Shown one piece after another: positions 960 to 62,859 of a stretch of 64,000 nucleotides of DNA; within the stretch, counting starts at the first letter, position 1, and the number at the start of each line of letters is the position of its first letter. The DNA is from Malacoraja senta (Eukaryota): contig JAXLNO010001028.1 in the NCBI GenBank assembly GCA_038087875.1, forward strand, positions 1 to 64,000, read 5' to 3'. Made by a program: the position numbers and the translations under genes. The notes under the pieces were generated by a model. The model was not told where the DNA came from. It did no database searches and was given only the letters and a program-made list of their open reading frames with translations.

Positions 960-1598
960 GGGCCTGTCCCACTTGGGCCGTCACTTACGCAACAGGCCGG
1001 TAGTGAAGGTCGCGCGATGGTCCCGTGAGAGTCGCGCGCGTCATCATGCGCCCGCACAGCCGTCTGGAGCACGTGACGTCATTTGAAAATGGGCACAAAA
1101 TGCAGGAGTAACTCAGCGGGGACCGGCAGTATCTCTGGAGAGAAGGAATGGATGATATTTTGGGTCGAGACCCTTCTTCAGTCTGAAAGAAGGGTCTTGA
1201 CCCGAAACGTCACCCATTCCTTCTCTCAAGAGATGCTGCCTGTCCCGCTGAGTTACTCCGGCATTTTATGTCTATCTTGGATCGTCTTGGCCCCGATCTG
1301 GGAGTAGGAGTGGGGGCGGATCCGGATCCGCAACGGCTGTGAGCTGAGTTCGACGATCGTTTGCCTGCTTCAGCTGCTGTTGGAGGTGAGACGTTGCGTC
1401 GCGTCAGGGTCTTGGGCCTGTCCCAACTTTGGCCGTCAGTTACGCGACAGGCTGTTGGCACGTGAAGATTTTGTGCAGGACAAAGTCCACATTCCTCCAC
1501 ACCATACCATGCGCCCGTCCCCGTGCTACCCACGTACTACCTACACGCTAGCAAGTCGCGTAAATGGCGCGCGAAAGACAGCCAAGTGGGACAGGCCC
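960..1598. mobile_element. Harbinger-type MITE, compound (two left ends, one right end), inserted in a SINE tail
   Basis: GGGCCTGTCCCACTTG at 960 and a variant at 1414; inverted CAAGTGGGACAGGCCC ending 1598; TAA/TTA flanks. Confidence 0.6.
1086..1278. mobile_element. Fold-back (palindromic) Penelope-end-derived element with head-to-head hammerhead-like cores
   Basis: ~95-bp arms symmetric about 1182; plus-strand CTGAAAGA-AGGGTCTTGACCC-GAAACGTC-ACC at 1183-1214. Confidence 0.75.
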
Positions 1599-1871
1599 TT
1601 AAGGCCCTGTTTCAGCACTGCATCTTTAAGCTAAACTAAAACATGGGTGAAGTCAGCACCAAAACTCAGAATCATAGTTCAAACACCAGTGAGTGAACTG
1701 TCAAATATTGGCACATGCCAGATTTTGGTTAACAGTAACTACATCGCAAAATATAGTTTGTAAAAGATAGATAAATATTTGAGGCAAAGGAAAATAAAAG
1801 CTTGCAGGAAAAGGCAAAGGTTATAGGATTGTTCCAGCAAAGAATCAATGATCCTTTATTCACTTCCATAC

Positions 1872-1964
1872 CTGCACCTCAAACGTCTGGATTGAATCCC
1901 CTTCCTCGTTATACGTGTATGGTCCCAATAGGATCCCTTCGGCTTGATTTTTATCATCCAAGCC
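1872..1964 (-). CDS. SUN domain exon (GLDDKNQAEGILLGPYTYNEEGDSIQTFEVQ)
   Basis: cacag acceptor, gtatgg donor, 93 nt phase 0/0; matches GLxDE..EG.LLG.FTY...G..IQTF motif. Confidence 0.88.
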
Positions 1965-2891
1965 CTGTGAACAAGTAGAAATTAGCAACCTTTACACACA
2001 GAAAATTACTCTCCAGTCACCCCAACAATTCTACCAGCTGGTGAAAGCAGGACTTTCACCCTTGCCTGGAAGAAAGCTTCAAGATTCAAGATTCAAGAGA
2101 GTTTATTGTCATGTGTCCCTGATAGACAATGAAATTCTTGCTTTGCTTCAGCACAACAGAACATAGTAGGCATTGACATAGTAGGCAAGACATTGGTTGA
2201 ATATATAAAGTCATTTCATTTCAAACAGTCAATTGGAAAAATGTCATTGCCTCATTTAGCACATGAAGTGAATCTGTACACAATCAAACAGAATGAAACG
2301 ATGCGTAGCATCAACTCTCATCTGTGGTAGAATCAGTGTGTCCCACCACAGGTGTCTCATCAGGCACCTCTATACCTACTAGAGTGGAAGCAAGTCATCC
2401 TCAATCCTGAGAGAATACCAGTGAAGAATTGTTCACCCCCACTCAGGAAAGCACTTGGCATAAAAATTGTCCCTAGTATGTGTAGTGTTAACTTTAATCT
2501 CATCTATTGGTTGTAAAGTTGCTTCATCACTGTATGAAGCTTTTGTGGTTAGCAGTGTTGAGGATTGTGCAATAAAGTGACAAAACTCAGTGAAGACAGT
2601 GAAAACCCAGAATCACAGTTCAAACATCAGTATGAGCAACTTGTGTAGCATGGAAGATTGAAGATTATATTAGAGGGCCTTCTATTTGAGGGATTATTGT
2701 TCTGGACTGTGAAATGGAATTTACTCATTTTTAACAGAACTTGTTAATGTTATTGACGTGGATTGTGAGACCACTCGGGACCCTGAACATGGAATCCAAT
2801 GTCCAAGAATGCCTTGCCATGTTCAGCAGCATGCTCCACACAAACACCATGGTTCCCAAACATTCACTCATATTCTATACGTTTCACTCAC

Positions 2892-3059
2892 ATAAACAGA
2901 TTAGTCTTGAGGGGCACTTCTAATTGATCCACTCGAAGAAATGGATCTTGGAATGTGCTCTAGGGTAAAGGCTGTAGGCCTGATCCGGACAGCAAGCTCG
3001 ATGACAACAAAGCCTTGGGAGCCTTTAAATGGCCAACAGTTCTCAGGATAAACCTCCGG
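2892..3059 (-). pseudogene. SUN domain exon with premature stop (PEVYPENCWPFKG...SAPQD*SVY)
   Basis: tgcag acceptor, gtgagt donor, 168 nt; TAA at 2903-2901 where family members have Phe (SAPKDF). Confidence 0.9.
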
Positions 3060-3149
3060 CTGCAAGAGAGAACAAGAACAAAACAATTAGGAAAGATTCT
3101 CAGTTTCATTTCGATATTCAGTGCGGAAACAGGAAATATTAACACTATC

Positions 3150-3372
3150 CTACCCACACTCGGGAAAATTTTTTTTTTACATTTACTAAGCCAATTAACC
3201 TACAAACCTGTACGTCTTTGGAGAGTGGGAGGAAACCGAAGATCTAGGAGAAAACCCACGCAGGTCACTGGGAGAACGTACAAACTCCGTACAGACAGCA
3301 CGCATAGTTGGGATCGAACCGGGGTGTCTGGCGCTGCAAGTGCTGTAAGGCAACAACTCTACCACTGTGCCG
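3150..3372 (-). mobile_element. HE1-like tRNA-derived SINE
   Basis: Minus strand GGCGGCACAGTGG...GGTTCGATCC A/B-box head plus conserved body gtttgtacgttctccc. Confidence 0.8.
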
Positions 3373-6870: not shown

Positions 6871-7115
6871 AAATTGGCCAGAGGGCAGAATAAGACCCAT
6901 CTTTTCTTCATACGCATTAAATGACTTGGAGTTCCAGATTTGTAGATGATACTGTGAACTGGGGATATTCATGGAATTGGAGGCAAATACAGAATTGGGT
7001 TTGAACAGCTGTAATTCAAATGTGAAATATTTCATTTTGGGAGGAGGGATAAGGCAATGTAAACTAGAGGGCACAATTCTAAAAGGAGTGAAGAAACAAC
7101 AGTGTCTCTGGAATG

Positions 7116-7149
7116 GGTGACGTTTCGGGTCGAGACCCTTCATCAGACC
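7116..7149 (-). ncRNA. Minimal type-I hammerhead ribozyme motif (best copy)
   Basis: Minus strand GGT-CTGATGA-A-GGGTC-TC-GACCC-GAAAC-GTC-ACC: conserved core, stem II, palindromic ACGT stem III, GUC cleavage triplet, 3-bp stem I. Confidence 0.72.
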
Positions 7150-7741
7150 TTCACATCCTTCTTACACACGTGGGTGATATATGTGCCTAATTTACTGAAA
7201 GAAGGAAGTTTAGGATGTTGTTTAAAAACGCCTGTACTTTATAAATAACAGCTCAGGGTACAAGAACAAAGAAGTGATGGGGAACTTTGTAAAACACAGG
7301 CTTGGCCACAGCTGGAGTAGTGCATCCAGTCCTGGCTGCCTGCCCTCAGAAAGGCATGAAGCTTCGGAGAGAGTGCACAAGAGAGTAACCAATGTGTTTG
7401 CAGGGATGGTGGAGCAGTGGACAGAATGAAGATGGCCGATGGTGCCCCAGGACAAGGCCATCCCACCGATGGCTCGGCCTTTAAATGAGTTGTGGCTGGT
7501 GCAACATCAAACAGTTACAAGTTAAATTAACATTCAGCAGTGTGAACCTCAGCAGCTCTGGGGAAACCTGTACTGTCAACATAGATTTGTACTTGCCTAT
7601 TCAGGACATATTGCCCAGTGTGAAAGAGACCCCATTCCACAGGAGCAAGTCAAACATGACTAAAGTGCCAGCCCACACAACACCCTTTCAGTCTGTTACA
7701 TTCAGAGTTTTACTTGGCCCAGGCTTTTGTCTGATACTTAC

Positions 7742-9003: not shown

Positions 9004-9298
9004 CTTAATAATCCCTGCTCTGACAGCTGCCGAGTGTGTCTCCATACCGAACTGTGGTGGGGAACAGAAAGATCTTGGAGAGCTTGTTGTGTAGGAAGGA
9101 AATGCAGATGCTGGTTTACGCTGAAGATAGACACAAAATGCTGGAGTTACTCAGCGGTCCAGGCAGCATCTAATGCTCCAGAGATGCTGTCCATCCCGCT
9201 GAGTTACTCCAGCATTTTGTGTCTATCTTTAGAGAGCTTGTTCATGCGCCTTTGAAGATAGTGGGACAGGCATCTTGGAACTGTTAGCTCAGCTGTAC
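9004..9298 (-). pseudogene. SUN-like gene, decayed exon interrupted by a 143-bp fold-back insertion
   Basis: ttacag acceptor at 9299-9300, gtacaa donor at 9003. Removing 9089-9231 plus one TSD copy leaves 141 nt (47 codons, phase 0/0) ending AAVRAGIIK, but with TAA and TGA in frame. An EQALQDL motif appears in a shifted frame. Confidence 0.5.
9089..9231. mobile_element. Fold-back Penelope-end element with 11-bp TSD
   Basis: GAGAGCTTGTT at 9078-9088 and 9232-9242; inverted arms, central ribozyme part deleted. Confidence 0.8.
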
Positions 9299-10449
9299 CT
9301 GTAACATTGTGTGGATTCTGGTTGCCTCCCTACAGGATTGATGGGAGTTCACTAGAGAGGCACAAGAAATGTTTACGACCTTGGCAGGACTGCAGAAGAA
9401 AGGTTGCAAGGAGAGAGTCGCCAGGAACTGCAGCGGGTAGATTGTTTGAGTGGCTATAATATTATAGAAAAAAAGAAAAAATGCTGGAGTAACTCAGCGG
9501 GACAGGCAGCATCTCTGGAGAGAAAGAATGGATCATGTTTCGGATTGAGACCCTTTTTCAGACGTCTCGACCTGAAATGTCATCCATCCCCCCCCCCCCC
9601 CCAGAGATGCTGCCTGTCTCACTGATGTCTATCTGTGGTGTAAACCAGCATCTGCAGTTCCTTCCTACACATAAGGCGATGATATTTTGACTGGTTCATT
9701 CAGAGTAAACAAGGTAACCATCTTTCCTACACAAAGTTGGAAATGTAATTCAATTAGCAAGTCAAGTCAAGTGAGTTTATTGTCATGTGTCCCTGGTAGG
9801 ACAATGAAATTCTTGCTTTGCTTGAGCACAACAGAACATAGTAGGCATTTACTACAAGGCATTCTATAAATATATACACAATGGTCAATATACTGATAAA
9901 GTGCAAATAACAGTATTGGCTAGTAAAGTTCAGTGTTATGTCCGAGCCAGGTTTAATAGCCTGATGGCTGTGGGGAAGTAGCACAAGGGTTTGATGCAAT
10001 TAGTACAGTGGGCCAAGGGTTCACTGCCTGAATGGTTGTTGGAAGCAGAACTCACATTTACTGGGCACCTGGACCAGCAGTAGAAGAGGCTGTGAGTGAG
10101 ATTCACCTGGCCTCCCAGCACGTAAAACAGAAGGTGGGAACTATAGGTCAATTGACAGATACATGGATAGGACAGGTTTGGAGGGATATGGACCAAACGC
10201 AGGCAGGTGGGACCAGTGTAGCTGGAACATGTTGGTGGGTTTGGGGGAGTTGGGCCGAAGGGTCTGTTTCCACACTGTATCACTCTATGATTCTAATTCA
10301 TCCAGCACTCATAGTTCACAAGAGGAAATAACTAATCATTTGGTAAGCTGCATCTAATCAAACGTAGCCGACATGGTTTAATGAAAATCATGTGTGATAA
10401 AACCTGACAGGATGTGATAGGGAGTTGATAAGGGAAACCTGTAAATGTA

Positions 10450-10612
10450 GGAGGAAGGAACTGCAAATGCTTGTTTAAACCAAAGATAGACACAATAAGC
10501 TGGAGTAACTTAGCGGCTCAGATAGCATCTCTGGAGAAAAGGACTTTTCTATTTGTTTTCTCCAGAGATGCTGTCTGACCCGCTGAGTTACTCCAGCTTT
10601 TTGTGTCTATCT
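10450..10612. mobile_element. Fold-back Penelope-end element with 12-bp TSD
   Basis: CCTGTAAATGTA at 10438-10449 and 10613-10624. Confidence 0.8.
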
Positions 10613-11289
10613 CCTGTAAATGTAATGTGTATTTAGATCTCCAAAAGGCATTTGCCACATATGAGGACAAATGTGCTAACATGGACTGAAAGGTGGAAGT
10701 GATATAGAAAAACAAGTTAGAATAAATGCGTGAAAACTGCAGATGGAATAAATGTGAAAAACAAAATGCTGGGAACAATCGGGTCAGGCTGCATCTGTAG
10801 CCAGAGAAACAGAATTCATGTTTCAAGTCAAAGACCCTTCGTCAGAACTGGGGAAGTGACAACAGAAACTTGTAAAGCTGCACAGGTGGGTGGATGACTC
10901 TGATAGTGTCAAACCAGGTGACCATGGGGATAAGCTGCACACAAAGTTATCTGGTCAAGGAGTGAATATGAGCGGTTAGGTTCTATATAAGGAAAATAGA
11001 CAAAGATCGTAGCAGTTGCAAAATGCAGAGCAAGAAGACATGTCTAGGAAGGAACGGCAGATGCTGTTTAAACCAAAGATAGACAACGGGACAGGCTGCA
11101 TCTCTGGAGAGAAGGAATGGGTGACGTTTCTGGTGGAGACGCTTTTCAGACAAGACATGTCTGGCAGGTCAGCATGGACATGCCCTCCACTTTTGGATAG
11201 AGATTTTAAAAAACAAGCCAACTCAATTATCACAAATGGACAACTGATACTAACAGAGGAATCAAGTTACCCAAGATTATCAAATTCCG

Positions 11290-13334: not shown

Positions 13335-13710
13335 TTGGTATGAAAACGCTAAAGCCGCCTTTGGTTTGAAAACGCTAATGTTGCCTTTGGTTTGAAAACG
13401 CTAAAGCCGCCTTTGGTTTGAAAACGCTAAAGCCGCCTTTGGTTTGAAAACGCTAAAGCCGCCTTTGGTTTGAAAACAGCTAAAGCTGCCTTTGGTTTGA
13501 AAACAGCTAAAGCTGTCTCGTTTGAAAACGCTAATGCTGCCTATGGTTTGAAAACGCTAAAGTTGCCTAAGGTTTTAAAACGCTATGTGGACAAAAGTGC
13601 TGGAGAAACTCAGCGGGTGTAGCAGCATCTATGGAGCGAAGGAAATGGGCAACGTTCCAAAACGCTATCGTTGCCTAAGGTTTGAAAACGCTAAAGTTGC
13701 CTTTGGTTTC
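13335..13710. repeat. 26-bp minisatellite (tttggtttgaaaacgctaaagccgcc), resuming at 15151-15220
   Basis: About a dozen tandem units; interrupted by a 72-bp insertion (13587-13658, TSD AAAACGCTAT) and by an L1. Confidence 0.9.
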
Positions 13711-21846: not shown

Positions 21847-23329
21847 TCTATCTTTCCCTCTCAAACCCATTCTCCTGCCTTCTCCCCATTACCTCTGACA
21901 CCTGTATCAATCAAGAATCTATCAATCTCCTGAAAAATGTCCATTGACTTGACCTCCACAGTTGTCTGTGGCAATGAATTCCACAGTTCACCACCTTCTG
22001 ACTTAAGAAATTCCTGCTCATCTCCTTCCTAAAGGAATGTATTTTAATTCTGAGGCTGTGGCCACTGGTCCTAGACTCTCCCACTAGTGGAAACATCCTC
22101 TCCACATCCACTCCATCCAGGTTTTTACCAGACTGGGACAGACGGCAACAGCTTCACACCGTGTCCCAAAGCTTGTGTCCTGTCCTGCGTCACCCAGGCA
22201 GCAGATACATTATAGGAGAGGGCAAGCACCGTAACAAGTTAGTTCACGATGGTTTGGGTAACATTCAGGAATGTCTATGCATGTCACATCATGAATATAA
22301 CTGAAGAAGGGTCTTGACCCGAAATATAATCTATACCGTTTCTCCAGAGATGCTGCCTGACTCACTGAGTTACTCCAGCACTTTGTCTATTTTCCCTTCA
22401 CCCATCTGCCCAAGCCCACTCTCCCCTCTCCTTTCCTATGTTCCTTTCCACCCATAAACCTCTCTCTGCCTTTACATTTCACTCCTCTGTCAAATCTGCT
22501 CTACTTATCTACATGCATTTTTCTTCTTAACTTTTTAGTCATAGAATGATGCAGTGTGGAAACAGGCCCTTCAGCCCAACTTGCCCACACCAACCAACAT
22601 GTCCCATCTACACTAGTCCCACTCACATGCGTGTGGCCCATATCCATGTAAACCTGTCCTATCGATGTACGTGTCCAAATGTCTCTTAAACATTAGGATA
22701 GTCCCAGCCTTAACTACCTCCTCTGGCAGCTTGTTCCATACACCCACCACCCTTTGTGTGAAAAAGCTAACTCTCAGATTCCTGTTAATTTCTGAAATAT
22801 TGGTCATGAATTTGATACGAAAATGCTCCAAAATAAGGCTCAGAATGCATCAGAGAGCATCTAAAACCCCTGAGCTTCCAGGGCCCTTAAGCGGGCCCTG
22901 GACCGCGGCATCGAGGGACTTCACGCTTCACGCTTGTGATGTGCACAGCGCGCACATTATTTCACATTACAATCTTTTTGTGATCCTGTCATGCCACCCC
23001 CCTTTTTGAAAAGCTTCGTACGGGCCTGAGTTAGGAAGGCATGTTGGTGCTTTACAGGTCATCAGCCACTGTGTAGCACTGGGAGATGGTACTGGTGAGT
23101 ACAGTTTAGTCCTGGCACAGCAGTGTGTACTGATAGGGACAGATCTATCACTGCATAACAGAGAATGCTGGAGAAACTCAAGAGGTCAGGCAGCATCTGT
23201 GGAGTGAATGGACAGACAACATTTTTAGTTGGGACTATTCTTCACACGGATTGTAGTATGGGGGGAGAAAGCTGGAAAAGAAAGCTGCCGTCCAAAAAAG
23301 AAAACTTGAATAAGCCCTTGATATAAGCC

Positions 23330-23838
23330 TGGCCGATTGTTTCACTGAACACCTTCACTCATTCCGCCTGGACCTACCTGATCTCCCGGTTCCCAAACAC
23401 TTTACTTCCCCTTCCCATTCCCACACTGACCTTTCAGTCCTGGGCCTCCTCTTTTGTCAGAGTGAGGCCAAACGCAAATTAGAGGAACAGCATCTCATAT
23501 TTCACTTGGGCAGATTACAACCAGTGGTATGAATATTGAGTTCTCTGACTTCGTAATCCCTGCATTCCCTCTCTATCCATCCCTCCCCCACCCAAGTCGT
23601 ACCAGCTTCAAAGTCCCTTCTCACCTAACAAACAGCTAACAATGGCCTGTTTTCTTTATCATCATTACTTTTGTGCATATCTTTCATTGATTTGATCTAT
23701 AGCTCTCTACATCACCGTCTATATCTCCCGTTTCCCTTTCCCCAGTCTGAAGAAGGGTCTCAACCCGAAATGTCACCTTTTCTCCAGAGATGCTATCTGA
23801 CCCGGTGAGTTACTCCAGCTTTTTGTGTCTATCTTCAG
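23330..23838 (+). mobile_element. Penelope-like element 3' end: GIY-YIG C-terminus, 3'UTR, hammerhead-like motif
   Basis: DLSVLGLL.CQSEAKRKLEEQHLIFHLG.LQP..MNIEFSDF followed by CTGAAGAAGGGTCTCAACCCGAAATGTCACC at 23747-23777 and the terminal arm. Confidence 0.8.
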
Positions 23839-24009
23839 TGTAAGCTATAGCTTGCAAAAGGGTGGTTAATAAATATTATGTGAATGCTGCAGTGGGATTA
23901 AACAATGTCGACAATTGATGCGTAACTGACAGGAAGCAAAACTTTTTGTAAAATATCTCCTTTGTTCTGGAGGTGCATAACAATGTTGTCACTGCCCCTG
24001 TAGCATCTG

Positions 24010-25854: not shown

Positions 25855-26978
25855 AACTTTCTGGGAGAAAATGTTTTTCCTCATCTCAGTCCTAAATGGC
25901 CTACCCTTTATTCGTAAACTGTGACCCCTGGTTCTGGACTCCCCCAATATCGGGAAATTTTTTCCTGCATCTAACTGTCCAATCCCTAAGGAATTTTATG
26001 TCCCTAAGGAATTAATAAGATCCCATGTCATCCTAAATTCCAATGAATATAAGCCCAGTCAGTCCATTCTTTCATCACATGTTTGTCCTGCCATACCGGG
26101 ACAATAAATATTTTACTTTTTTATGAACAATATCCTTGATTTTATTGCTTTAAAAAAAAAATTCTGTTCCAGTCCCACCACTAAGATTTTTGCTGTATAA
26201 TTGTTTGGGTCCTTTCCGCCTTCAATCAATTGAAAGCCAGAGTGGTAAAGAAGCCATTATTCATAGCATTGAGTATAAGAGTCAGGAAGTCATATGCTGC
26301 TTTATGGAACTTCAAAGATAGACACAAAATGCTGGAGTAACTCAGCGGGACAGGCAGCATCTCTGGATAGAAGGAATGGGTGACATTTCTGGTTGAGTCC
26401 CTTCAGGCTGAAGAGGAACTTTCTGGGAGAAAATGTTTTTCCTCATCTCAGTCCTAAATGGCCTACCCTTTATTCGTAAACTGTGACCCCTGGTTCTGGA
26501 CTCCCCCAATATCGGGAAATTTTTTCCTGCATCTAACTGTCCAATCCCTAAGGAATTTTATGTCCCTAAGGAATTAATAAGATCCCATGTCATCCTAAAT
26601 TCCAATGAATATAAGCCCAGTCAGTCCATTCTTTCATCACATGTTTGTCCTGCCATACCGGGACAATAAATATTTTACTTTTTTATGAACAATATCCTTG
26701 ATTTTATTGCTTTAAAAAAAAAATTCTGTTCCAGTCCCACCACTAAGATTTTTGCTGTATAATTGTTTGGGTCCTTTCCGCCTTCAATCAATTGAAAGCC
26801 AGAGTGGTAAAGAAGCCATTATTCATAGCATTGAGTATAAGAGTCAGGAAGTCATATGCTGCTTTATGGAACTTCAAAGATAGACACAAAATGCTGGAGT
26901 AACTCAGCGGGACAGGCAGCATCTCTGGATAGAAGGAATGGGTGACATTTCTGGTTGAGTCCCTTCAGGCTGAAGAGG
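25855..26978. repeat. Exact 562-bp tandem duplication
   Basis: 25855-26416 repeated at 26417-26978; no differences seen, including a 10-A run; 2-bp AA microhomology at the junction. Confidence 0.9.
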
Positions 26979-28377
26979 AAAGGGAGACATGGAGATAAGG
27001 AAGTGTAAGGTATGAAAGAATGACATCAAAGGAGATGTAGTTCAAGGAAAATGTAGAATAGATCATTGTTAGCTAGGAGAGGGTGTGAACGAAGCAGACA
27101 GATAATTTTTAATCAGGGGGGCAGTCAGACTGGTCGGAGAATAGAACTTCAGATAGGCGACTTTTAGAATATTATCGGCATTTCTAGTTGCCCCAATGCA
27201 GGATGAATTTGGAAGCATGGAATTAGTGCAGAGGTGGTTTGCCAGAATGATGCACAGATTAGATATTAGCTAGAAGGAGAGGTTGGACAGACTTAGATTG
27301 TAATCGCTAGAATGCTGGAGGTTGATAAAAGTATATAAAACTATGAGAGGCATAGATGGGATAGAGAGTCAGAAACTTTTCCACAGGGTGGAAAGTAATG
27401 GAGAGCATAGTTTTCAGGTGAGTGGGACATGGTGTAAAGGGCCATGTATTAATAGAAGGCTCAATGAGAGATTTCTGCACTGATGTTGAGACTGTGCTGC
27501 ACGTTTACACCTAGACACAACTTTAAACTGAGCTCATGTCTCTCCTCCCAGCTGAAAAAAGAGACGCATGGTATTACCTCAAATAAGGGCTGGGAAATTA
27601 TTACACATGCATTGTCCAATTTTTATTACTTAAGCAATAACAGTAAAGTGGACTAAAGACAGACACAAAAATGTTAGATGGAGCTCTAGGGGCTGGTGGA
27701 ATCAAGGGATATGGGGAGAAGGCAGGCATTCATTGGGGACGATCAGCCATGATCACCATGAATGGCGGTGCTGGCTCCAAGGGCTGAATGGCCTCCTCCT
27801 GCACCTATTTTCTATGCTTCTAAAAAGATGGAGTAACTCAGCAGGTCAGGCAGCACTTCTGGGAAAAAGGAAAAGGTGACGATTTGTGTCGAGACCCTTC
27901 CCGAAATGTCACCTACTCCTTTCCCCCAGAAATGCTGCCTGACCCGCTGAGTTACTCCAGCTTTTTGCATCTGCCTACAGTAAAACAAGCATCTGCAGTT
28001 CCTTCCTACACAGTAAAGTAGACTATCTGGTTTATCTAAAACTGCAGTTTGTGGAATTGACTGCATTCTGAATTGTAAAATAGTTATACTTTGAGAAACA
28101 TCTATTCGGTTGTAAGATGCTATGTGAAATATGATTTTGTAATTGTTGTCCTTAAAACACCAATATAATCCCTACCATAAAACCTGATCCTTAAACTGTA
28201 TTCACTGGTAATTAGTGACCAGAACAAGTGGTCTCATTCCCATTGTTATCAGGTTTGTGTACACATGGACCAATAATTAGCTTCACAGCAGAGTTCTGTT
28301 AAAAAAGTACAAGAGATTAAGTTACTGTTGCTGCATTTACTCTCCTGGTTAAATAGTGCTGTGGGCGGCTGTTAAAC

Positions 28378-28429: not shown

Positions 28430-28729
28430 GTAAGCAATGCTCCTTCTACTTGTGAACTTTGAGGAAACAACAAAACTGATTCTATTTACTGTTGCACAGT
28501 CCCTGTGTTTGCCCTGGGTACATTGTCTTGGATGTATTAATTGAATGATTGAATTGAATGTATTAATAATTTTGGGTAACGGTCTTTCCTTAGTTGTAAA
28601 GGCTCCTGTGGGAAGTTATATACACTATGGTTACCTTGGCAATCCAATGAACAGAGGAACTGAATACAGGTAAATAATGAACATAGAACATAGGACAATA
28701 CAGCACAGGAGCAGTTCCTTCAGTCCTTC

Positions 28730-28763
28730 AGTCTGAAGAAGGGTCTCGACCTGAAACGTCACC
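28730..28763 (+). ncRNA. Minimal hammerhead ribozyme motif in MHC intron 1 (sense)
   Basis: AGT-CTGAAGA-A-GGGTC-TC-GACCT-GAAAC-GTC-ACC; G.U wobble at the base of stem II. Confidence 0.55.
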
Positions 28764-29459
28764 CATTCCTTTTATCCAGAGATGCTGCCTGACCTGCTGA
28801 GTTACTCCAGCATTTTGTCTACCTTCGCCCACAATGTCTGTGCCGAACAAAATAAACTAATCTCCTCTACCTGTATGTGATCTGTATCCGGCCATTCCCT
28901 GCCTATCTATGTACCTATCTAAAAGCCTCTGAAATGTAACTGTTATATCTGCCACCACCATCACCACCACTGGCAGCGCAGTACAGGTGTCCACCACCCT
29001 CCACATAAAACAACTTGCTCCGCTCATCTCCTTTGAACATTGCTTCTCCAACCTTAAAGTGATGTTCTCTGGTCTTCAACATTTCCACCCTGGGAAAAAG
29101 GTTCTGGCTGTCCACTCTGTCTGTGCCTCTCACCATGTTATGCACTTTCATCAGGTCTCCCTTCAACCTCCAGTATACAAGAGAAAACAATCCATGTTTG
29201 TCCAATCTGTTCTTGCACTAATACCTCAGAGAGAATTCAGGTAAACCGGTGATGTGCACTTTCAATAAAGAAGTGACTTCTGCATTAGTAGGTGTTCCAC
29301 CTCTCCAAGATTTCCTCAGCTGGTGTTAGACACCCACATGATGGTAAAATTCAGCCTGCATCAAATGACAAATCAATGTTGTGTTAATGTTGTTGCCATC
29401 TTGTTGTTTGTTGCATGCTTCCTGTACTGCAGACCCTATCCATTACATCACCACCACTT

Positions 29460-33545: not shown

Positions 33546-33926
33546 CGAGTTTCAGTTTAGACCCTGTTTATTATAGTCTGCTCCGACCCCACCCCCACCC
33601 CCCACCCCACCCAAGCCTTGATAGTCGGGACTCATCAGTAAGGTCTTCTTTACACTTACTGTTACAGAATCCCAATGTCCTCATAAGTCAGAAGTGCCCC
33701 ATTCCATGCAGAGATTTCCCACCAGATGGGCATTTCAGGGTTGCAGCTCATAGAGATGGTGCCTATGAGGACCTGGACTCAATCCCGATCTCTACTACAA
33801 CCTGTGTGGCACTTTTATTCTTTCCCTGAAACCATGTGTGCTTCCTCTGGTTATTCCAGTTTCTCCCAATATTCCAAAGATGAGAGGCTGAGAGGTAAAT
33901 TGGCCAGTGTGAATTGATCGTACATA

Positions 33927-39235: not shown

Positions 39236-40046
39236 GTTCTACAACGTGGGTATCAGTAAATTGTCTGGCAACGTGCCTCTTAGATGGAGCCAGTGGGTAG
39301 GAAGTGCAAGTGAAAGATAAATATTGTACCAGTGTCCTCTATCCACAGTCATATAGATATTCAGGAAATGGAGGGATATGTATCTTGGTCTTATGTTTAG
39401 CATTGACCTTGTGCCTGAAGTGTCTGTTGCTGCGCTGATCAGAAACCCAATCAGATTCTCTATTTGCCTCTATTACTCCTTGGGATGGTGACATCCAATT
39501 TCCAACAGTTCTCTGGTTGAAGAACTTCTTCCTCCCATTCCCTCTTGGAATATTTAGTGTTATTATTCAGCTGAGATTCATGAACAAGTAGAAGCAATCA
39601 TGTCTACAGTATCAATCCCAATGGTGAGTTATACTCCTCCATTGGGCCTGCATTCCCCTTACATCTGCGCTGTCAGTTCAAGTCTGGAGCTAAGATAAGG
39701 AGCATGTCAGTGATATTAAAACTAAATGTTTTGTTGTTTTGCCAGAAATGCAAAATGAAAAGAGAAAAGGCTGTAAACTGTGTGCAAGATAGAACTGCAG
39801 ATGCTGGTTTACACTGAAGATAGAAGATGTTGGAGTAACTCAGTGGGTCAGATAGCATCTCTGGGCATTCCTTCTCTCCAGAGATGCTGCCTGACCTGCT
39901 GAGTTATTCCAGCATTTTGGGTCTAGGCTGGAAACTTTGTTCAGCTGGAGAAAAAACTGATTGGGAAAGAGGTGAGTTGCAGTGATCTTACAATTGAAGG
40001 CTTTTGTTCATGTCTTCACTGATTCTGACGCTTCCTACACTTGCAG

Positions 40047-49770: not shown

Positions 49771-51977
49771 TCCTCCCTTGCCAGGTTCTTCTTTAAAATA
49801 GCTACGAAGAAGATTTATTTTCCAGGAGGTGTATGATTTGCCTGAACATTCTATTCCAGCTGTGAAGACAAGGTGAATGAATATTTTCCAGGTTGAGATA
49901 TAGAGAGTTTTAGATCAGAAATGAATCAAAGGTAGCAGGAATAATGCAGTAAACTGATCGAAATCAGATTGGACATAATGTTATTGAATGATGCAGTCTG
50001 TTCAAGGGGGCTTACAGCTGATTATTAATCTTATTTTATATAAAACATAAAAATGTTCATCTCAGGAAGAGGCCCTTTGGCCCACAATGTCTGTGGTGAA
50101 CATGATGAGATGCTAAACTGATCCCATCCAACTGCAACATGATCCATATCCCTCTATTTCCTGCAGATCAGTTTGTCAATCTAAAAGCCTCTCAAACATC
50201 ATATACATATCTTGCCTGAGATAGACACAAAAAGCTGGAGAAACTCACCGGATCTGACAGCATCTCTGGATACAAGACATAGGTGACATTTCGGGATGAG
50301 ACCCTTGTTCAGACTCCAGAAATGCTGTTTGACCCGCTGAGTTACTCCAGCTTTTTGAGCCTATCTTTGGTTTAAACCTGCATCTGCAGTTCGTTCCTAG
50401 TTATTTTGCCACTTCTCTTTGTCACATACTGTAAGCTGCATTCCTTGTTCACATACCTGATGGTGTAGTGGAGAAGTAATTGCCTTTGCATTTAATGCTT
50501 CACTCAGTGCTTCAAGTATTTGATGGGCCAGTCAACAAGGATCTTTGTTTTCAATACGAACCATGCTCTACACCACAGCTTACATAATATTGCTTAGTTT
50601 AGTTGAGTTATACAGCATGGATGCAGAGCCTTCAGCTCATCGAGTTGATACCAACCATCCAACACACCAGTTCTATGTTATCCCTCTTTCACATCTGCTT
50701 TCCATACACTAGAGCAATTTTACAAAGGCCAACTCACCTACAAACCTGTACATCATTGAGATGTGCGAGGAAACCGGAGTACCGGGAGAAATCCCACGTG
50801 GTCACAGGGAGCACATGCAAACTCCACATAGACAACATCCCAGTACCATGTCCAGTGAATATTTATGGAACATGGTAACGTATGGGGGCTGTGTTTTGTT
50901 GACCTGACAGAGCACTGGGAACAATACTCATTATCAAAAATGTGGTGTAATAGCTGTGGAAGTGTTTTATGTGCAACAGACTGAGAATTTCATTGTATAT
51001 CCACCAGTGTCATTTCTGAATTATGAGCATTTAATAAAATACTTTTGAATGAGTTTTACCAAGACGTTAGCATGCTATATACTTGTTTTGTCATTGTTAA
51101 TACTACAGACAGCTATTTACTCTATCATAAGTTCATAAGATCATAAGTGATAGGAACAGAATTAGGCCATTCGTCCCATCTACTTAGCTGTAAGGAGACA
51201 CACTCTCTACAGTAACTTTCTCACATGACTGAACTTTGAGGATCAGTTTGCACATGGTATGTTTGAGAGCTATTTCCATTTACTGGGAGACATCACAGCC
51301 TAGCCTGAACTAGACTGCATGCTACTCCATAGTTAAGGGCGAGAACAAGGCTTTTTGTCTGTCAGTCTGATATTGATTACAGTTGAATTCAGGAAACCCA
51401 ATACCAAGCACAGCCTTTCACGAGGAAAAGCAAACAAATTGTGGCATTTACTTCAAGAAATACTCACTCTCCCTATTGGACAATGTTAATGAATTCTGTT
51501 TCAAACAATGAGTTCAAACCATGCTAAACAAGTCCAAAACATTCTTAATGTAAACAAAGGAACTGCAGATGCTGGTTTAAGCCGAAGATAGACACAACAT
51601 GTTGTAGTAACTCACAGGCACAGGCAGCATCTCTGGATGGAAGGAATGGGTGATGTTTTGGGTTGAGATCCATTGGGGGGAAAAATCCTCCTGGCCTATG
51701 TGTAAATCGCATGTCAATGAGAATGGAGATGTTGACTGTGAAATGTGAGTCAGTGGGATTTGGATGGAAATGTGAACTTATAAAATTTAAAAGTAGTCTA
51801 TTGGATCTGAACACATCTTGGTCTGAAGTAGGGTCTCGACCCACAATGTCACCCATTCCTTCTCTCTAGAGATGCTGCCTGTGAGTTACTCCAGCATTTT
51901 GTGTCTGTCTTCCGTGTAAACTGGCAGTTCCTTCCAGCACATTTGGTATGTGAATCAGTATTGTGTGACTGGCTAAT

Positions 51978-54170: not shown

Positions 54171-54331
54171 TTCCACAGCTTGAGTTGTGCAAAGTCATGG
54201 AGAACACATCTCCGGTCAGTCAGCTAATTTCCATTGTGTTCAGTGTGTTGGACTGAGGGAGAAAAATGGGATTAAAGGATGAGATTCGTTCTCCAGTTGC
54301 TGTGATACATTGTAAATGGATCGATTGTAAT

Positions 54332-54533
54332 GTGTATGAAGGAACTGCAGATACTGGTTTAAACTGAAGATAGACATAAAAAAGCTGGAGTAACTCAGCG
54401 GGGCAGGCAGCATCTCTGGAGAGAAGAATTGAAGAAGGGTCTCAACCCGAAACGTCACCCATTCCTTCTCTCCAGAGATGCTGCCTGTCCTGCTGAGTTA
54501 CTCCAGCTTTTTGTGTCTATCTTCAGATCTTCA
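54332..54533. mobile_element. Fold-back Penelope-end element with degenerate 13-bp TSD
   Basis: GATCGATTGTAAT (54319-54331) vs GATCGATTACAAT (54534-54546); retains TTGAAGAAGGGTCTCAACCCGAAACGTCACC. Confidence 0.7.
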
Positions 54534-56619
54534 GATCGATTACAATCATGTATTGACTTTCTGCTGACTGGTTAGCACACAACAAAAGCTTTTCACTGTA
54601 AACAGCTTTCACTGTTTCACAATAAACTAAACTGAACTGAGACTATTAATACTTCATACCTGTGCATAAACCTGGGCAAATGAATTTTAAAATAATTCTT
54701 GACTATAACCTGCTTATGTATTCAAGTGACAGTGGTTCAATGGTACTTTATTGTCGCATATACCTGGGTTCAGTGAAATTCCTTTTTGCATACAGTTCTG
54801 TCAAACATTTACAATCCACAAGGACAATCATACTTTAGTACAAGACTACAGGAAATATAGATTACATTGAGACAATACACAAGAGTTACCACATTTCCAC
54901 TAACATTTTGCATAAATCAAAACTCCAAAGTTGTAAACAATGTAGAGATTTAACTTGACCTTATAACCTATTGCTTTGGTGGCAGCACTGGTTTGGAGCT
55001 GCAGGGTTTAGCCCACATTATTTGGTATTAGTGTAAAGTTCACAATATCAGGATTAATCTTGCATGGAACAGACACTGGTCCACGGCCCTAACTTGAATC
55101 TGACTTTATGAAATAATTGAGCATTGTACACTTGACCTGGCATTCCTTATCAAGATTACTAGAAGCGACAACCTGCCCAGCCAATGTTACCTCAAAGTGA
55201 CTATGAGTGTGATGAACATGGATTGACTTGGAACGTTTCCTGAAAGATCAGCACACATTGAAATGATAACGCAATAATTCAATGCATAGATTACTTTGCC
55301 CAGAGTAGGGGAATCGAGGACCAGAGGACATAGGTTCAAGGTGAAGGCGAAAAGATTCAATAGGTATCCGAGGGGTACACAAAGGGTGGTGGGTTTATGG
55401 AACAAGCTGCCATAGGAGGGAGTTGAGGCTGGGACTATGCTATTGTTTAAGAAACAGTTGGACGTACATGGATAGGACAGGTTTGGGGGGGATATGGACC
55501 AATCGCAGGCAAGTGGGACCGGTGTAGCTGGGACATTGGTGGCCGGTGTGGGCGAGTTGGGTCGAAGGACCTGTTTCCAAACTGTATCACTCTATGACTC
55601 TATGATATTATTACTAAAATTAATTAACGACAATCAAGTAGATTGTTTGAAGCTGTTCCCATTCCTTATGCAGATACCAAGTAACCCAATCAAGGTAAAT
55701 CAATGTTAGGTGCCTGGAAAATGTAGAGTACTCAGTAATCAAGATCTGGGACTTTAGTGACCTTCCTTCCTTCCTTCCATTATAAAGTCAAAAGTGATTG
55801 TCTGTTGTTGATTGCACAATGCTCAATTTCATTTCCTCGTTTAGTCACTGCACCACAAGCTTTAACCAGCGACAAAACACACTGCAGATACGTGTCATCT
55901 AGCCCATCAGAACATTCCAAACTCAACATCTCAAGCACAAGAACAACAAGGTCAGCAGATGTGTGAGAACCTGACCTGGGATCCATCCTGACTTAGAATT
56001 GAATCACCATTTGTTCATAATTGAGTTTGGTTTAGAGATATGTCATGCCGGCAGTTCGAAATAAACAGGTCGGGAGAGGGTAGAAGGCCGGCACAGGGGG
56101 TCGTAGAGGAGGGGGAATGTTGGATACGGAGGACGGTGTTTTCATTGGGAGGTGAGGACTCCTTCCCGTAGAAAAAGGCTCGGAAGCGGAGGCAACTGAA
56201 GAAGAGCTCTACATCATGGTAAGCCCTGAACTCGTTGAAGTGGGGGTGTAGGGATACAATGGTAAGGCCTCTGTTGAAGACTGACTGTTCTGTATCAGAA
56301 GGAAGTCGCAGGGGGGGGGGGAAGGATCCCAGACAGCTCTACCATACATTGTAGGGGCCAATGGCCGAAAGCTGGGACTGCAAACCATGTGAGTTGATGT
56401 CTTTGGCCGGCTGGTGGCCGGTGACGAGGCGAGGATCGGCGGAGTCAATGGGCCCACGACGGGCTAGAGTACAGGTGAAGGTTGGAGGCAAACATGGCCT
56501 GGAAGCTTTGTGGGCCGATGGTGGCATCGGCAACAGTGTCAGTAGGTCAGGCCTGGAAGCTCCATTAACCATTCTTCAGCCCACTTGTCTCACTGATCAA
56601 GATCCAGCTGTAATTTTTG

Positions 56620-58209: not shown

Positions 58210-59412
58210 TATGACAATAAAACAATATTGACTCTTGAATGTATATAAAGTATCTTTGGATTCTTTGCCAGAGTTGACACCAAAATTGATAAGTATATTA
58301 GGTAATGATAATTGTTGTCTAAGATTACAAAATAATGTTGATCAACCGGAAAGGTATGGAGGTGAGGGGATGGGAGTTGAGGGGGTGTGGGGAAGGAATG
58401 CCAGTTGAAATCTAACTCAAACAAGTGTGATTTGATGCCTTTTGGGAAGTCAAATCAGGGCTGGCCAAATCTATTGCAGGATTGTAAATGGAGCTGTACC
58501 TTGGTGTACAATTACATAGTTCCCTGAGAATGGCATCATAGTTTGATCGGGTAGTGAAGGGAATATATGTCTGAAGAATCGCCTCGACCCAAAACGTCAC
58601 CCATTCCTTCTCTCCAGAAATATTGCCGCTGAGTCTCTCTAGCTTTTTGTGTCTATCTTCGGTTTAAATTAGCATCTGCTGTTCATCCCTACACAGAGTA
58701 TATGTTATGCCTTGTTTCCTCAGCCATGGTACTGAGGACTAGGGTTGGGGTGTCGTGTTACAGTTGTACAGAATGTTGAACAGGCAACCATTAATCTGTC
58801 CAGGGGCTCAGCTGATTTGTTGCACAATAGACTCTAATCCAAGGTCTGAACTCTGAAAAGAAAATCAAGAAATTCAAGTTGCCACTCATCCAGGGACTGA
58901 ATAACAAAACACATCTTTGTTTTGCTTATCTGGCTTGAGAACTCTTAACATTGATCTATTTTCCTTCATAGTGTACTCCCTTTATAAAATGGCCATCCCC
59001 AGACATCTATCCTGTGTCCACACTGTTTTCCAAGGGCACCTCACCTATTTTCAGCTCTGCTCTTAACAAGGATCAATCACATTATCCCTCTCTATCTCCC
59101 TATATCTCTCTATATCTCTCTCCATCTATTTATCTCTCCATCTCTCATCCCTCAGCTCTATCTCTCTTTCCTTCATCTCTTTCATTTCTGCAAATTGAAA
59201 TAATTAATCAGTCTGAGAGCACTGTGTGTGACTGAATGACATCAGAGCATCAGTCCCTGAGGCATACCACTGGTCACAGGCTTCCTATGTAAAAAAACCC
59301 AACCCTGCACTGCCATTCTCTGACTCCTGCCACCAAGCCAACTTTGTGTCCAATTGACTAGCTCACCCTGTTTTCCAACCTAATGGACCAGCCACCCATG
59401 TGGGGCCTTGCT

Positions 59413-60287: not shown

Positions 60288-60334
60288 TAAGCTGTGTCTG
60301 CGTTGTCCATGCACACACTCTCAGGGCAGAATTA

Positions 60335-60635
60335 GTTTAGTTTAGTTTAGAGATACAGCCTGGAAACAGGCCTTTCGGCCTACCAAGTTTGCGAAGACCA
60401 ATGATCCCTTTACATTGGCACTATCCTACACACACTAGGTACAAATTACAATTTACAAACCAATTAACCTACAAACCTGTACGTCTTTGGAGTGTGGGAG
60501 GAAACTGGAGCACCCGGAGAAAACCCATGCGTTCACCCAACATACAAACTCCGTGCAGACCGCACCCATAGTCAGGATCGAACCCTGGTGTCTGTTGCTA
60601 TAAGGCAGCAACTCTACCGCTGCGCCACCCTGCCG
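60335..60635 (-). mobile_element. HE1-like SINE, full length
   Basis: Reverse-orientation head/body/tail. Confidence 0.8.
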
Positions 60636-61046
60636 CCCCTAAGTATAGATATAGGGAAAGATACAGCAGCCTGAAAACCGTGACAACCAGATTCAAGAAT
60701 AGCCTCTTCTCAGCAATCATCAGGCTCTTCAACACCGCACAAAACTAACTTCAGCATCTATGATCATCTACGGACTGTCTTTGAATGTAATATGAATTTA
60801 GTTTTTTGCACTATTATGATAGTCCAGTATTACAGTTATTAATTTATTGTTTTATTGGTTGTTTTATATTATCTCTGTGTTATTGCAGTTACATGCAGGT
60901 GAAGCTGCAGCAAGTCAGAATTTTGTTGTTCTATTGTTGATACATATGACAATTAAACGACTCTTACCTCACATTTGATCTTGGGTAAAGCTCACTCCAT
61001 ATTACCCCCACCATACACTCAGGAAAAGTACAAGGAACAAGTACAT

Positions 61047-62041
61047 GTTTAAGAAAGAACTGCAGATGCTGGAAAAATCCAAGGTAGACAAAAATGCTGG
61101 AGAAACTCAGCGGTGAGGCAGCATCTATGGAGCAAAGGAATAGGTGATGTTTTGGGTCGAGACCCTTCTTCAGACTGATATGGGGGTGGGGGGGCGGGAA
61201 GAAGAAAGGAAGAGGTGGAGATAGTAGGCTGTGGGAGAGCTTCGAAGGGGAGGGGAAGGAGGGAGAAAGCAAAGACTACCTGAAAATGGAGGTCAATGTT
61301 CATACCGCTGGGGTGTAAACTACCCAAGCGAAAAATGATATGCTGCTCCTCCAATTGCGGAGGGTCTTACTCTGGCCGTGGAGGAGACCCAGGACAGAAA
61401 GGTCCGATTCTGAATGGGAGGGGGAGTTGAAGTGCTGAGCCACCGGGAGATCAGGTTGGTTAATGCGGACTGAGCGGAGGTGTTGGGCGAAGCGATCGCC
61501 AAGCCTGCGCTTGGTCTCACCGATGTAGAGCAGTTGGAGGAGGGGCAGGTGAACCTCTGCCTCACTTGGAAAGACTGCTTAGGCCCTTGGATGGAGTCAA
61601 GGGGGGAGATAAAGCGACGAGTGTAGCATTTCCTGCGGTTGCAAGGGAAAGTGCCAGGGGAGGGGAAGGTTAGAGAATGGGGCTTCTTCTCTTCGACTAT
61701 AGATGAGGCTCTCACCAGGGTCTCTTCTATATCTCATTGCTCCGCTCTCATTCCCCATCCCCCCACTCGTGACAAGTCCCCCTTGTCCTCACATTCCACC
61801 CTACCAGCCGTCACATACAACAGATAATCCTCCAACATATTCGCCACCTCCAACGGGATCCCATCACTGGCCACATCTTCTCATCTTTCAGCTTTCTGCA
61901 GAGACTGCTCCCTCTGTAACTCCCTGGTCAATTTGTCCCTTCCCACCCAAGCCACCCCCTCCCCTGGTACTTTCCCTTGCCACCGCAGGAAATGCTACAC
62001 TTGTCGCTTTACCTCCCCCCTTAACTCCATCCAAGGACCTA
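61047..62041 (-). mobile_element. Penelope-like element 3' portion (GIY-YIG, 3'UTR, terminal arm) with an inverted upstream fragment
   Basis: LYIGETKRRLGDRFAQHLRS and EEQHIIFRLGSLHPSGMNID on the minus strand; 61690-62041 is a plus-strand piece of the same ORF. Confidence 0.85.
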
Positions 62042-62540
62042 GGCATGCCATGCTATCCAAACAGATTAGATATACCATACACAGATATAATCAATTAAAA
62101 GGGGAATAATATCATGCAGCATAACGATCTCAGCATTGTAGCGCATCAGTTCCAGTGAGAAAGACCAATGATCTCGGTGGATAGACGTAAATCATACTTA
62201 CCATAACCTACAGAAAAACTGTTCAGAAGCCAGATAACAGAGGGGAAGGAGCTGTCGCTGAGGCTGGTGGTACGTGCCCTTCAATCTTCTGCACCTTCTG
62301 CCAGACGGGAGCCAAACCTATCCATGCCTTTCATAATTTTACATACTTCTATCAGGGCTCCCCTCAACTAATTGGAGCAGGAAACCAATGTAGGAACTCA
62401 GTTTTGGCAATGATACAAAAATAGATGAAATGGCACGGTTTAATGAGGAAAGTATGATTTTACAACAGGATATAGATAGCTTGAGTGATTAGTCAAAACC
62501 TGGCTAATGTGTTTAATGTGGGAAACTGTGAGGTCATGCT

Positions 62541-62830
62541 GAAGATAGACACAAAATGCTGGAGTAACTCAGCAGGACAGGCAGCATCTCTAGATAGAAG
62601 GAATGGGTGACGTTTCAGGTCGAGACCCATTTTCAGACTGCAGAACTCTCGTTGGAGAGAGGAGGAGAACTTCTTCAAAGTAGGCATACCTTGAGGAGAT
62701 TTCTCAGTGGAGAAGCCAAATTGTGTAGGAAGGAACTGCAAATGCTGCCTCACACTGAAGATAGACACAAAATGCTGGAGTAACTTAGCAGGACAAGCAG
62801 CATCTCTAGGTAGAATTGGTGATGTTTCGA
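62541..62830 (-). mobile_element. Tandem dimer of Penelope-end arms with 8-bp TSD
   Basis: GTCATGCT at 62533-62540 and 62831-62838; two same-orientation arms separated by an ~80-bp spacer. Confidence 0.65.
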
Positions 62831-62859
62831 GTCATGCTCTTTGGCATGAGGAATCAAGT

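Follow-up and report, generated by a model that had tools for sequence, protein, structure and literature searches.

Short fold-back repeats with a predicted hammerhead motif in a Malacoraja senta contig are probably truncated cDNA ends of Penelope-like elements

The first 64,000 nucleotides of contig JAXLNO010001028.1 of Malacoraja senta (assembly GCA_038087875.1; this whole stretch is referred to as the window) contain many copies of a short non-coding repeat, here called the arm, which bears a predicted minimal hammerhead ribozyme and is found as head-to-head palindromes, in tandem and alone. The arm is the 3' end of a Penelope-like element (PLE), and in our assessment arms and fold-backs are probably dead-on-arrival copies, made when the PLE itself carried out target-primed reverse transcription. 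The evidence comes from the collinearity of the arm with PLE coding and untranslated sequence, from the anatomy of the insertions and from the sharing of arm subtypes between short and longer copies.

To delimit the repeat, we built an nhmmer profile from 21 copies, which describes a 136-nt non-coding arm and is used as coordinate ruler throughout (the CUGANGA box occupies positions 6-12 and the predicted cleavage falls between 33 and 34). It is the sole profile of this analysis. Across the 64-kb window the profile detected 40 arm segments (E 1e-5 to 4e-44), and blastn returned 35-38 matches when queried with a single arm or with the 3' kilobase of the 61040-62100 copy. The segments cluster into about 24 insertion units (Table 1), units also being what is counted as "roughly 20" copies in an earlier interpretation of this DNA made from its letters (hereafter the sequence-only reading), and diverge from the profile consensus by ~6-29%. 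The commonest compound form is the inverted pair, of which there are nine. Eight are head-to-head palindromes, comprising all six that had been listed before (A, 1084-1282; C, 9088-9233; E, 10452-10618; N, 27822-28012; T, 50204-50399; V, 54331-54527) and two additional ones (D, 9475-9671; S, 39782-39925); the ninth is unit U (51554-51940), whose arms have 146 bp of unrelated sequence between them and which may represent two separate insertions. Tandem arms were found at the two sites where they had been reported, P (33000-33381 with an inverted arm at 33457-33562, 33000-33563 in all) and Y (62541-62830), and the remaining units are solo copies. Individual arms mostly measure 50-135 nt, the inverted pair often is the whole insertion, and arms and longer copies stand at a ratio of ~33:7.

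The sequence-only reading had placed the arm at the 3' terminus of two GIY-YIG fragments, and both copies indeed have a sense-strand arm behind the C-terminal end of the open reading frame (ORF). In copy X, on the minus strand, the ORF (61303-61578) and its stop are followed by ~130 nt of pyrimidine-rich untranslated region (UTR) and the arm at 61177-61046; in copy K, on the plus strand, the ORF (23320-23529), a stop and a 214-nt UTR precede the arm at 23744-23847. Both copies place the hammerhead on the sense strand of the parent element. Along this strand the order is endonuclease stop, pyrimidine-rich UTR of 130-200 nt, minimal hammerhead and a 3' remainder, which reaches a "short" end ~65-70 nt beyond the hammerhead or a "long" end at ~103 nt. 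Several further copies are collinear with the UTR alone, so that the proposed derivation of the repeat from a PLE stands, with at least two PLE subfamilies present.

The ORF piece of copy X has 38 homologues among eukaryotic gene predictions (E down to 2e-21), whose alignment reads FPCNRRRCYTC and then VVY...C..C..LLYIGETKRRLGDRF.EHLRSV. Six of the 15 aligned family members match the Pfam GIY-YIG domain (PF01541; best E 3e-6), an Atlas comparison of the ORF piece yields GIY-YIG clusters at 0.92-0.93, and the K fragment (23320-23529) shares 63% identity with homologue P0004 (E 2e-26). The window also encodes the CX2-5CxxC linker, as FPCNRRKCYT(R) at ~61600-61670 (-) and as FPCHRRKCYTC at ~61990-62030 (+), and the same motif is found in homologues P0016, P0027 and P0038. 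A C-terminal GIY-YIG domain following such a linker is the endonuclease of Neptune-type PLEs (Craig et al, 2021, PMC8557442). By sequence comparison, the arm is assigned to PLEs with a Neptune-type linker, of whose sense strand it forms the final 100-135 nt.

The insertions have a characteristic anatomy. Arm 3' ends fall into two zones, a short one at profile positions 95-110 (...GTGTCTATCTT) and a long one at 131-137 (...GTTCCTTCCTACACA), and the tail that makes up the difference is ~35 bp long; solo and tandem forms have the same 3' end points. Tails of 30-40 bp at one end have been described for PLEs (PMC8557442), and the anole element PAc has two internal reverse-transcription (RT) start sites ~35 nt apart in vitro (Frangieh et al, 2024, PMC11167929). 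By analogy, the arm tail would correspond to the stretch between the two PAc start sites. Exactly one long and one short end are present in eight of nine two-ended units (binomial P = 0.018). All palindromes have their 3' ends outward, paired arms are unequal in length at their inner and outer ends, and the centres vary (profile positions 3/3, 53/46, 3/15, 40/36, 10/16, 48/37, 3/45 and 38/7 in the order A, C, D, E, N, S, T and V). Tandem junctions are equally irregular, joining at position 121 with 4 nt, at 136 with 21 nt and at 136 with 82 nt between the arms. Truncation within the unit affects more than half of the arms, and every copy keeps the segment beside the RT start sites, as would be the case for cDNAs with a fixed 3' end. 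Early stop of synthesis is a known PLE feature and is observed in the window copies.

Target-site duplications (TSDs) range from 7 to 13 bp across the units, and PLE TSDs are known to be variable in length (PMC8557442). The lengths of 8, 10, 11, 12 and ~13 bp reported before were recovered at Y, C and W, G, E and V, and S, respectively; no TSD was found for 1084-1282, 27822-28012 and 50204-50399. Unit G, whose 11-bp TSD abuts the arm directly, shows that an arm alone can be the whole insertion. One single TSD encloses the whole of palindromes C, E, S and V, of the two-arm tandem Y and of the four-arm complex P, and partner arms share the base at profile position 85 in nine of nine pairs (estimated P ~0.002); together, these observations argue for an origin of each such unit in a single event, from one source of RNA. 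Arm-to-arm identity within palindromes (0.76-0.94, highest in unit V) is indecisive on this point because it barely exceeds the background of 0.79 +/- 0.07, and it is the TSDs and the shared subtype that decide. Variable TSDs, 5' truncation and collinearity with a retroelement 3' end also bear out the earlier claim that the copies were inserted by retrotransposition. Palindromic copies with flanking TSDs would equally be expected of a fold-back DNA transposon of the miniature inverted-repeat transposable element (MITE) type, moved by a transposase acting on terminal inverted repeats, but this explanation already fails and retains practically no probability: TSD length is not fixed, the arms of a pair differ at both inner and outer ends, the 35-bp tail is on one end only, and solo and tandem forms stop at the same 3' points as the palindromes. 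The variable TSDs and asymmetric ends, together with the collinearity of the arms with a retrotransposon 3' end, exclude a MITE, as the sequence-only reading had also held.

That reading had further inferred an independently mobilised, non-autonomous family. The arm subtypes do not bear this out: T65/A85 is joined to UTR or ORF in unit M, A65/T85 in the right part of K (K-right) and A65/A85 in the inverted arm of P (P-inv), and subfamily 2 is so joined in X, in the left part of K (K-left) and in the copy at 38187-38265. Since each arm subtype is also joined to UTR or ORF, there is no separate arm-only lineage in the window.

These features can be accommodated in one scheme. The PLE ribonucleoprotein would cut both target strands with a variable stagger, as suggested by the anatomy of the insertions and by the anole PLE enzyme, which nicks and extends both DNA strands in vitro (PMC11167929). 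Each 3'-OH would then prime cDNA at one of two internal RNA sites ~35 nt apart, and synthesis would usually abort within 50-135 nt. Priming on one strand would give solo arms; priming on both would give cDNAs joined head to head with outward 3' ends, in which the centre varies and a long end is matched by a short one, and the staggered second cut would produce the TSDs of 7-13 bp. Irregular tandems might stem from template jumps or from re-insertion into an existing copy; the mixed subtypes of complex P and reported PLE self-targeting are hints of the latter route. The hammerhead would be a passenger of the parent element, present only where truncation fell upstream of it, and copies would arise independently of it.

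The state of the hammerheads is in line with such a passenger role. A 28-nt hammerhead pattern with up to three mismatches has 11 matches in the window versus 0.00 expected (100 shuffles). The reverse strand of the arm as first described reads CTGA(A/T)GA-A-GGGT-CTCG-ACCC-GAAAC-GTC-ACC, in agreement with the sequence-only reading, and resolves into CUGA(A/U)GA, A, GGGU-CUCG-ACCC, GAAA, C-G-U-C and then ACC, with a helix II of 4-5 bp. The consensus and the intact copies (CUGAAGA-A-GGGU...ACCC-GAAA-CG-UC) have the catalytic boxes CUGANGA and GAAA, the cleavage triplet GUH, G10.1-C11.1, no helix III loop and the palindromic ACGU, which in minimal hammerheads is able to pair only in a dimer or with a second copy (Cervera & de la Pena, 2014, PMC4209133). 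These are the sequence traits of the published descriptor of the minimal type-I hammerhead, which had been named beforehand, and the arm thus carries a minimal PLE-type motif that is predicted to be a ribozyme. Beside the core, helix I has only two possible pairs (U2.1-A1.1 and G2.2-C1.2) where four to five are usual, and D. virilis PLEs likewise have a 2-bp helix I (PMC4209133). An Rfam scan of the window gave no hammerhead at the gathering score nor at E <= 10, RNAalifold on 18 arms returned no consensus structure, and helix II, an 8-bp helix between 53-60 and 111-118 and a local hairpin reached 87% pairing with no covariation beyond shuffles. Because Rfam, RNAalifold and covariation were all null, the assignment rests on the motif and the published descriptor.

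The motif is covered by 18 arms and intact in three of them, at 7119-7146 (-), 28733-28760 (+) and 33461-33488 (+), and the other 15 cores are broken, mostly at two CpG sites. The sequence-only reading had taken two back-to-back hammerheads as the design of the family, but unit A is the only inverted pair out of nine that has two. One complete hammerhead each is present in D, T and U, the right arm of V lacks C3 only, N is without a complete box, and C, E and S have no hammerhead at all. Moreover, the palindromes as RNA would fold into hairpins of -82 to -142 kcal/mol in which the ribozyme core is paired with its own complement. With all subtypes linked to PLE sequence, hammerheads mostly decayed and two of them only in A, there is no need for a separate ribozyme-dependent, self-mobilising family. 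Hairpins of this length and near-perfect symmetry might alternatively have been co-opted as host small-RNA precursors (microRNA- or small interfering RNA-like), or the hammerheads might be kept for RNA processing. A low-threshold Rfam scan indeed gave weak microRNA-model matches (E 0.013-0.09), but these lie far below gathering scores and reflect hairpin shape only, and the lack of covariation and consensus structure, the CpG decay of the cores and a divergence from the consensus as for neutral decay make co-option highly improbable.

The reading of the copies as truncated PLE cDNA has some gaps, and one observation speaks against it. No PLE reverse transcriptase part and no full-length element is linked to any arm in the window; the RVT_1 matches at 29578-31107 and 20148-20540 belong to long interspersed nuclear elements (LINEs), the first adjoining an apurinic/apyrimidinic (AP) endonuclease domain. 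The window copy of the GIY-YIG ORF by itself reaches only E = 0.087 in Pfam, and its predicted identity as GIY-YIG rests on its homologues. Two-strand priming is carried over from the anole element and would apply here by analogy. Complex P mixes arm subtypes and may therefore derive from more than one event. The observation against it concerns the 5' ends: of 31 arms without continuation into UTR, 13 begin at profile positions 1-7, inside TCAGTC|TGAAGA (P ~2e-5 versus a uniform distribution), and ten of these starts, including those in units G, W, P1, P2, A, T and V, are unequivocal, since a TSD or another arm borders them. Such a spike is not expected from random truncation, and a discrete short template RNA would fit it.

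The pile-up suggests a discrete RNA 5' end, and the spike fits either the RNA start of the autonomous element itself or a short non-autonomous template. The TCAGTC boundary, we presume, fits an initiator. An internal promoter of LINE-like type with initiator (Inr) and downstream promoter element (DPE) has been described for D. virilis Penelope (PMC2377424). On these grounds one could propose a true family resembling short interspersed nuclear elements (SINEs) or retrozymes, in which a short RNA starts just 5' of the hammerhead, ends beyond the RT start sites and is copied in trans by PLE enzymes, so that arms with the sharp 5' boundary are full-length copies. The preponderance of arms over longer copies would agree with this, and PLE-derived non-autonomous hammerhead elements have been proposed (Cervera & de la Pena, 2020, PMC7229834; Li et al, 2026, bioRxiv 10.64898/2026.07.22.740005). 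We nevertheless regard it as unlikely. An autonomous element whose RNA started at the same site would give the same spike, the subtypes show no arm-only lineage, over half of the arms are truncated within the unit, and tandem junctions are irregular. In addition, the PAc enzyme needs template RNA 3' of the RT start (PMC11167929); if so here, an inserted arm, which ends at the RT start, would lack the required downstream RNA and could not be copied again. It is a tentative and rather doubtful proposition that TCAGTC is a real RNA 5' end, for example an initiator, and that the commonest copies are full-length run-off cDNAs of a ~100-135-nt RNA. Copied from the nearest internal RT start, such an RNA may be a minimal non-autonomous template or a PLE leader transcript. 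A small cluster of 5' ends just 3' of the cleavage site (profile 36-40) was not significant (P = 0.2).

Insertions of endonuclease-containing (EN+) PLEs are the closest known counterpart (Evgen'ev & Arkhipova, 2005; Arkhipova, 2006; Craig et al, 2021, PMC8557442; Frangieh et al, 2024, PMC11167929). They share heavy 5' truncation and partial tandems, the head-to-head inverted 5'-truncated copy, the 30-40 bp tail at one end and the variable TSD (PMC8557442, PMC11167929), as well as the hammerhead in the terminal repeat, the C-terminal GIY-YIG domain and the CX2-5CxxC linker. The window copies differ in being extremely short (50-135 nt per arm), with the inverted pair often constituting the whole insertion, and in the sharp 5' pile-up upstream of the hammerhead, which is not described in the cited PLE papers. 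The metazoan PLE minimal hammerhead is alike in CUGANGA/GAAA, G10.1-C11.1 and an ACGU without helix III loop; the window motif differs from it by the 2-pair helix I, in which it resembles D. virilis, and is undetected by the Rfam models. Thousands of dispersed single minimal hammerhead motifs have been interpreted as truncated PLEs, and pairs on opposite strands 100-700 bp apart have been reported (PMC4209133).

Non-LTR retrozymes (PMC7229834; bioRxiv 10.64898/2026.07.22.740005, with one cartilaginous fish sampled) resemble the arms as short non-coding hammerhead sequences related to PLE terminal repeats, in their co-occurrence with PLEs and in TSDs of >4 bp, and the idea that PLE ends can spawn non-autonomous hammerhead elements is published. 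Retrozymes proper, however, consist of regular head-to-tail units of 150-450 bp with canonical type-I hammerheads, loop-loop contacts and circular RNAs, whereas the window copies have irregular joints, inverted pairs as commonest compound form and a minimal PLE-type hammerhead that is often missing. The sequence-only reading had called the family retrozyme-like; with only two tandem sites, and because their junctions are irregular, the window tandems are not retrozyme-like unit repeats. LINE-1 (L1) twin priming is similar in that both 3'-OH ends of a staggered break prime, leaving opposite pieces within one TSD, and copy X (61046-62045), with its 90-nt overlap, looks like such a case. The second L1 primer anneals at a random internal site, whereas the window arms usually start at two defined RT start sites, which accounts for near-symmetric palindromes.

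Table 1. Arm-bearing units of the window (numbers after the strand are profile positions; short and tail denote the 3' end type)
Unit	Span (strand)	Arms and attached parts	Hammerhead and remarks	TSD
A	1084..1282	1184-1084 (-, 3-102) + 1180-1282 (+, 3-104), head-to-head	sole palindrome with 2 motifs, one decayed, the other with inserted A; both outer ends short; RNA hairpin -141.7 kcal/mol	
B	7099..7172 (-)	arm fragment, 4-61; inverted tail fragment 7149-7172 abuts arm	exact hammerhead 7119-7146, CTGATGA variant	
C	9078..9242	9088-9171 (-, 53-136, tail) + 9175-9233 (+, 46-104, short)	no hammerhead	10 bp GAGAGCTTGT, 9078-9087 / 9233-9242
D	9452..9686	9475-9564 (-, 3-92, short) + 9563-9671 (+, 15-136, tail)		weak candidate, 12 bp with 2 mismatches
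E	10438..10624	10452-10545 (-, ~40-131, tail) + 10549-10618 (+, ~36-99, short)	no hammerhead	12 bp CCTGTAAATGTA, 10438-10449 / 10613-10624
G	11035..11162 (-)	solo arm 11151-11041, 4-136 with internal deletion		11 bp AAGACATGTCT, 11035-11045 / 11152-11162, directly abutting arm
H	13578..13658 (-)	subfamily-2 arm fragment, 26-106	inside satellite array	possible 10 bp, ambiguous because the target is repetitive
J	22300..22393 (+)	solo arm, 5-100, short	hammerhead decayed at CpG sites	
K	23158..23847	K-left: subfamily-2 arm with upstream UTR 23247-23158 (-); C-terminal GIY-YIG fragment 23320-23529 (+), ends in stop; 3' UTR 23530-23743, then arm 23744-23847 (+)		
M	26289..26966 (-)	26404-26289 and 26966-26851, both 11-121	2 identical arms	
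N	27822..28012	27901-27822 (-, 10-89, short) + 27893-28012 (+, 16-136, tail)	complete CUGANGA box retained in neither arm	
O	28729..28827 (+)	solo arm, 2-102, short	intact but for one helix II G-U pair	
P	32990..33572	3 tandem (-) arms: 33381-33263 (3-121), 33257-33124 (3-136), 33109-33000 (19-136); inverted arm 33457-33562 (+, 2-110) with 75 nt PLE UTR 33382-33456 attached	exact hammerhead in inverted arm	9 bp CTG(C/T)TTATT, 1 mismatch, around whole 33000-33563 complex
S	39768..39943	39865-39782 (-, 48-135, tail) + 39866-39925 (+, 37-96, short)	no hammerhead	~13 bp, 2 mismatches, 39768 / 39925
T	50204..50399	50315-50204 (-, 3 to ~99, short) + 50312-50399 (+, 45-132, tail)		
U	51554..51940	51674-51554 (-, 11-131) + 51821-51940 (+, 4-135)	both arms tailed	
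V	54319..54545	54430-54331 (-, 38-136, tail) + 54430-54527 (+, 7-104, short)	youngest pair, arm-to-arm identity 94%	~12 bp, 2 mismatches, 54319 / 54534
W	58561..58705 (+)	solo arm 58571-58695, 6-136, tail		10 bp, 1 mismatch, 58561-58570 / 58696-58705, directly abutting
X	61046..62045 (-)	subfamily-2 PLE 3' part: arm 61177-61046, 3' UTR 61178-61310, GIY-YIG ORF 61303-61578, CX4CX2(C) linker to ~61670; inverted internal PLE piece 61956-62045 (+)	90-nt overlap of inverted piece with linker	
Y	62533..62838 (-)	62830-62722 (~25-136, tail), spacer 62721-62640 (82 bp), 62639-62541 (3-101, short)		8 bp GTCATGCT, 62533-62540 / 62831-62838

Some units have features of their own. The two arms of unit M (26289-26404 and 26851-26966) have a common flank on one side and a duplication period of ~560 bp; as identical arms with the same one-sided flank, they are a local duplication and not two insertions, and at least in copy M2 (26966) the pyrimidine-rich PLE UTR continues upstream of the arm. 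Copy X contains an inverted repeat (61576-61665 / 61956-62045) of 90 nt with 92% complementarity in endonuclease-linker coding sequence, its two copies lying 290 nt apart; the inverted piece looks like a twin-priming 5' inversion. A possible 9-bp TSD, ACCATACAC, is located at 61010-61018 / 62074-62082, ~28 bp outside both ends of copy X. Within the arm, positions 53-60 and 111-118 (for example 33197-33204 with 33139-33146, -) are exact complements, AGATGCTG and CAGCATCT, and are among its best-conserved parts; the potential helix would enclose the short RT start zone, and 92% of the cells pair, with no covariation.

The spacer of unit Y (62640-62721, -) reads in sense ...CTCAAG|GTATGC...(51 nt, pyrimidine-rich)...CTGCAG| directly before the hammerhead and resembles the short intron that abuts the D. 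virilis Penelope hammerhead. As a general feature such a mini-intron was rejected: the 5' splice-site-like match occurs only in the unit Y spacer, a 5' splice-site scan at the threshold used gave none in the four copies of subfamily 1 or with a linked ORF (K-right, P-inv, M2 and X), and the two candidates in K-left are distant, lying 127 and 180 nt upstream. Two further candidates for PLE coding sequence were likewise dismissed. The ORF at 56018-56338 (-), considered as a possible PLE N-terminal segment, gave nothing in Pfam or Atlas. A search of 1.84 billion proteins with the arm open frame lent no support to the idea that, as in the anole element, the N-terminus of the PLE ORF is encoded by the arm: the matches were confined to short spurious ORFs, which diverge directly behind the tail.

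The window contains other repeats and coding remnants. The LINE at 29578-32361 (-; RVT_1 E 1e-34, AP-type endonuclease E 5e-13) is unrelated to the PLE arms, and a further reverse transcriptase fragment lies at 20148-20540. DNA transposon remnants comprise a DDE_Tnp_4 match of PIF/Harbinger type (47384-48469, -), a hAT dimerisation domain (19255-19860, +) and a Tc1-type helix-turn-helix (34609-34965, -). The satellite into which arm fragment H was inserted (~13540-13700) has a unit of ~24 bp (for example aaacgctaaagttgcctaaggttt), and positions 1-520 can be read in several frames on both strands as one long open stretch, proline-rich and of low complexity (simple repeat). Two stretches are coding parts of a gene like major histocompatibility complex (MHC) class I (38493-38867 and 39998-40357, both +; PF00129 alpha-2 E 3e-16, C1-set Ig domain E 1e-14), and palindrome S (39782-39925) lies ~70 bp upstream of the open stretch with the C1-set domain (39998-40357).

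Much of the individual evidence has precedents. Dispersed minimal hammerheads as truncated PLE ends, fishes included, are already published, and so are opposite-strand pairs, inverted and tandem partial copies, the one-sided tail and variable TSDs (PMC4209133, PMC8557442, PMC11167929). Read in this way, the hammerhead fold-backs are ordinary debris of PLE retrotransposition and as such should not be regarded as a new mobile element based on a ribozyme. The window offers a clean natural illustration of priming on both strands and of two internal RT start sites with a tail at one end, and the 5' pile-up provides a small lead on where PLE template RNAs begin. If TCAGTC were indeed the 5' end of a short template, this would place the hammerhead at the template's extreme 5' end and provide a simple rule for how PLE ends come to swamp such genomes.

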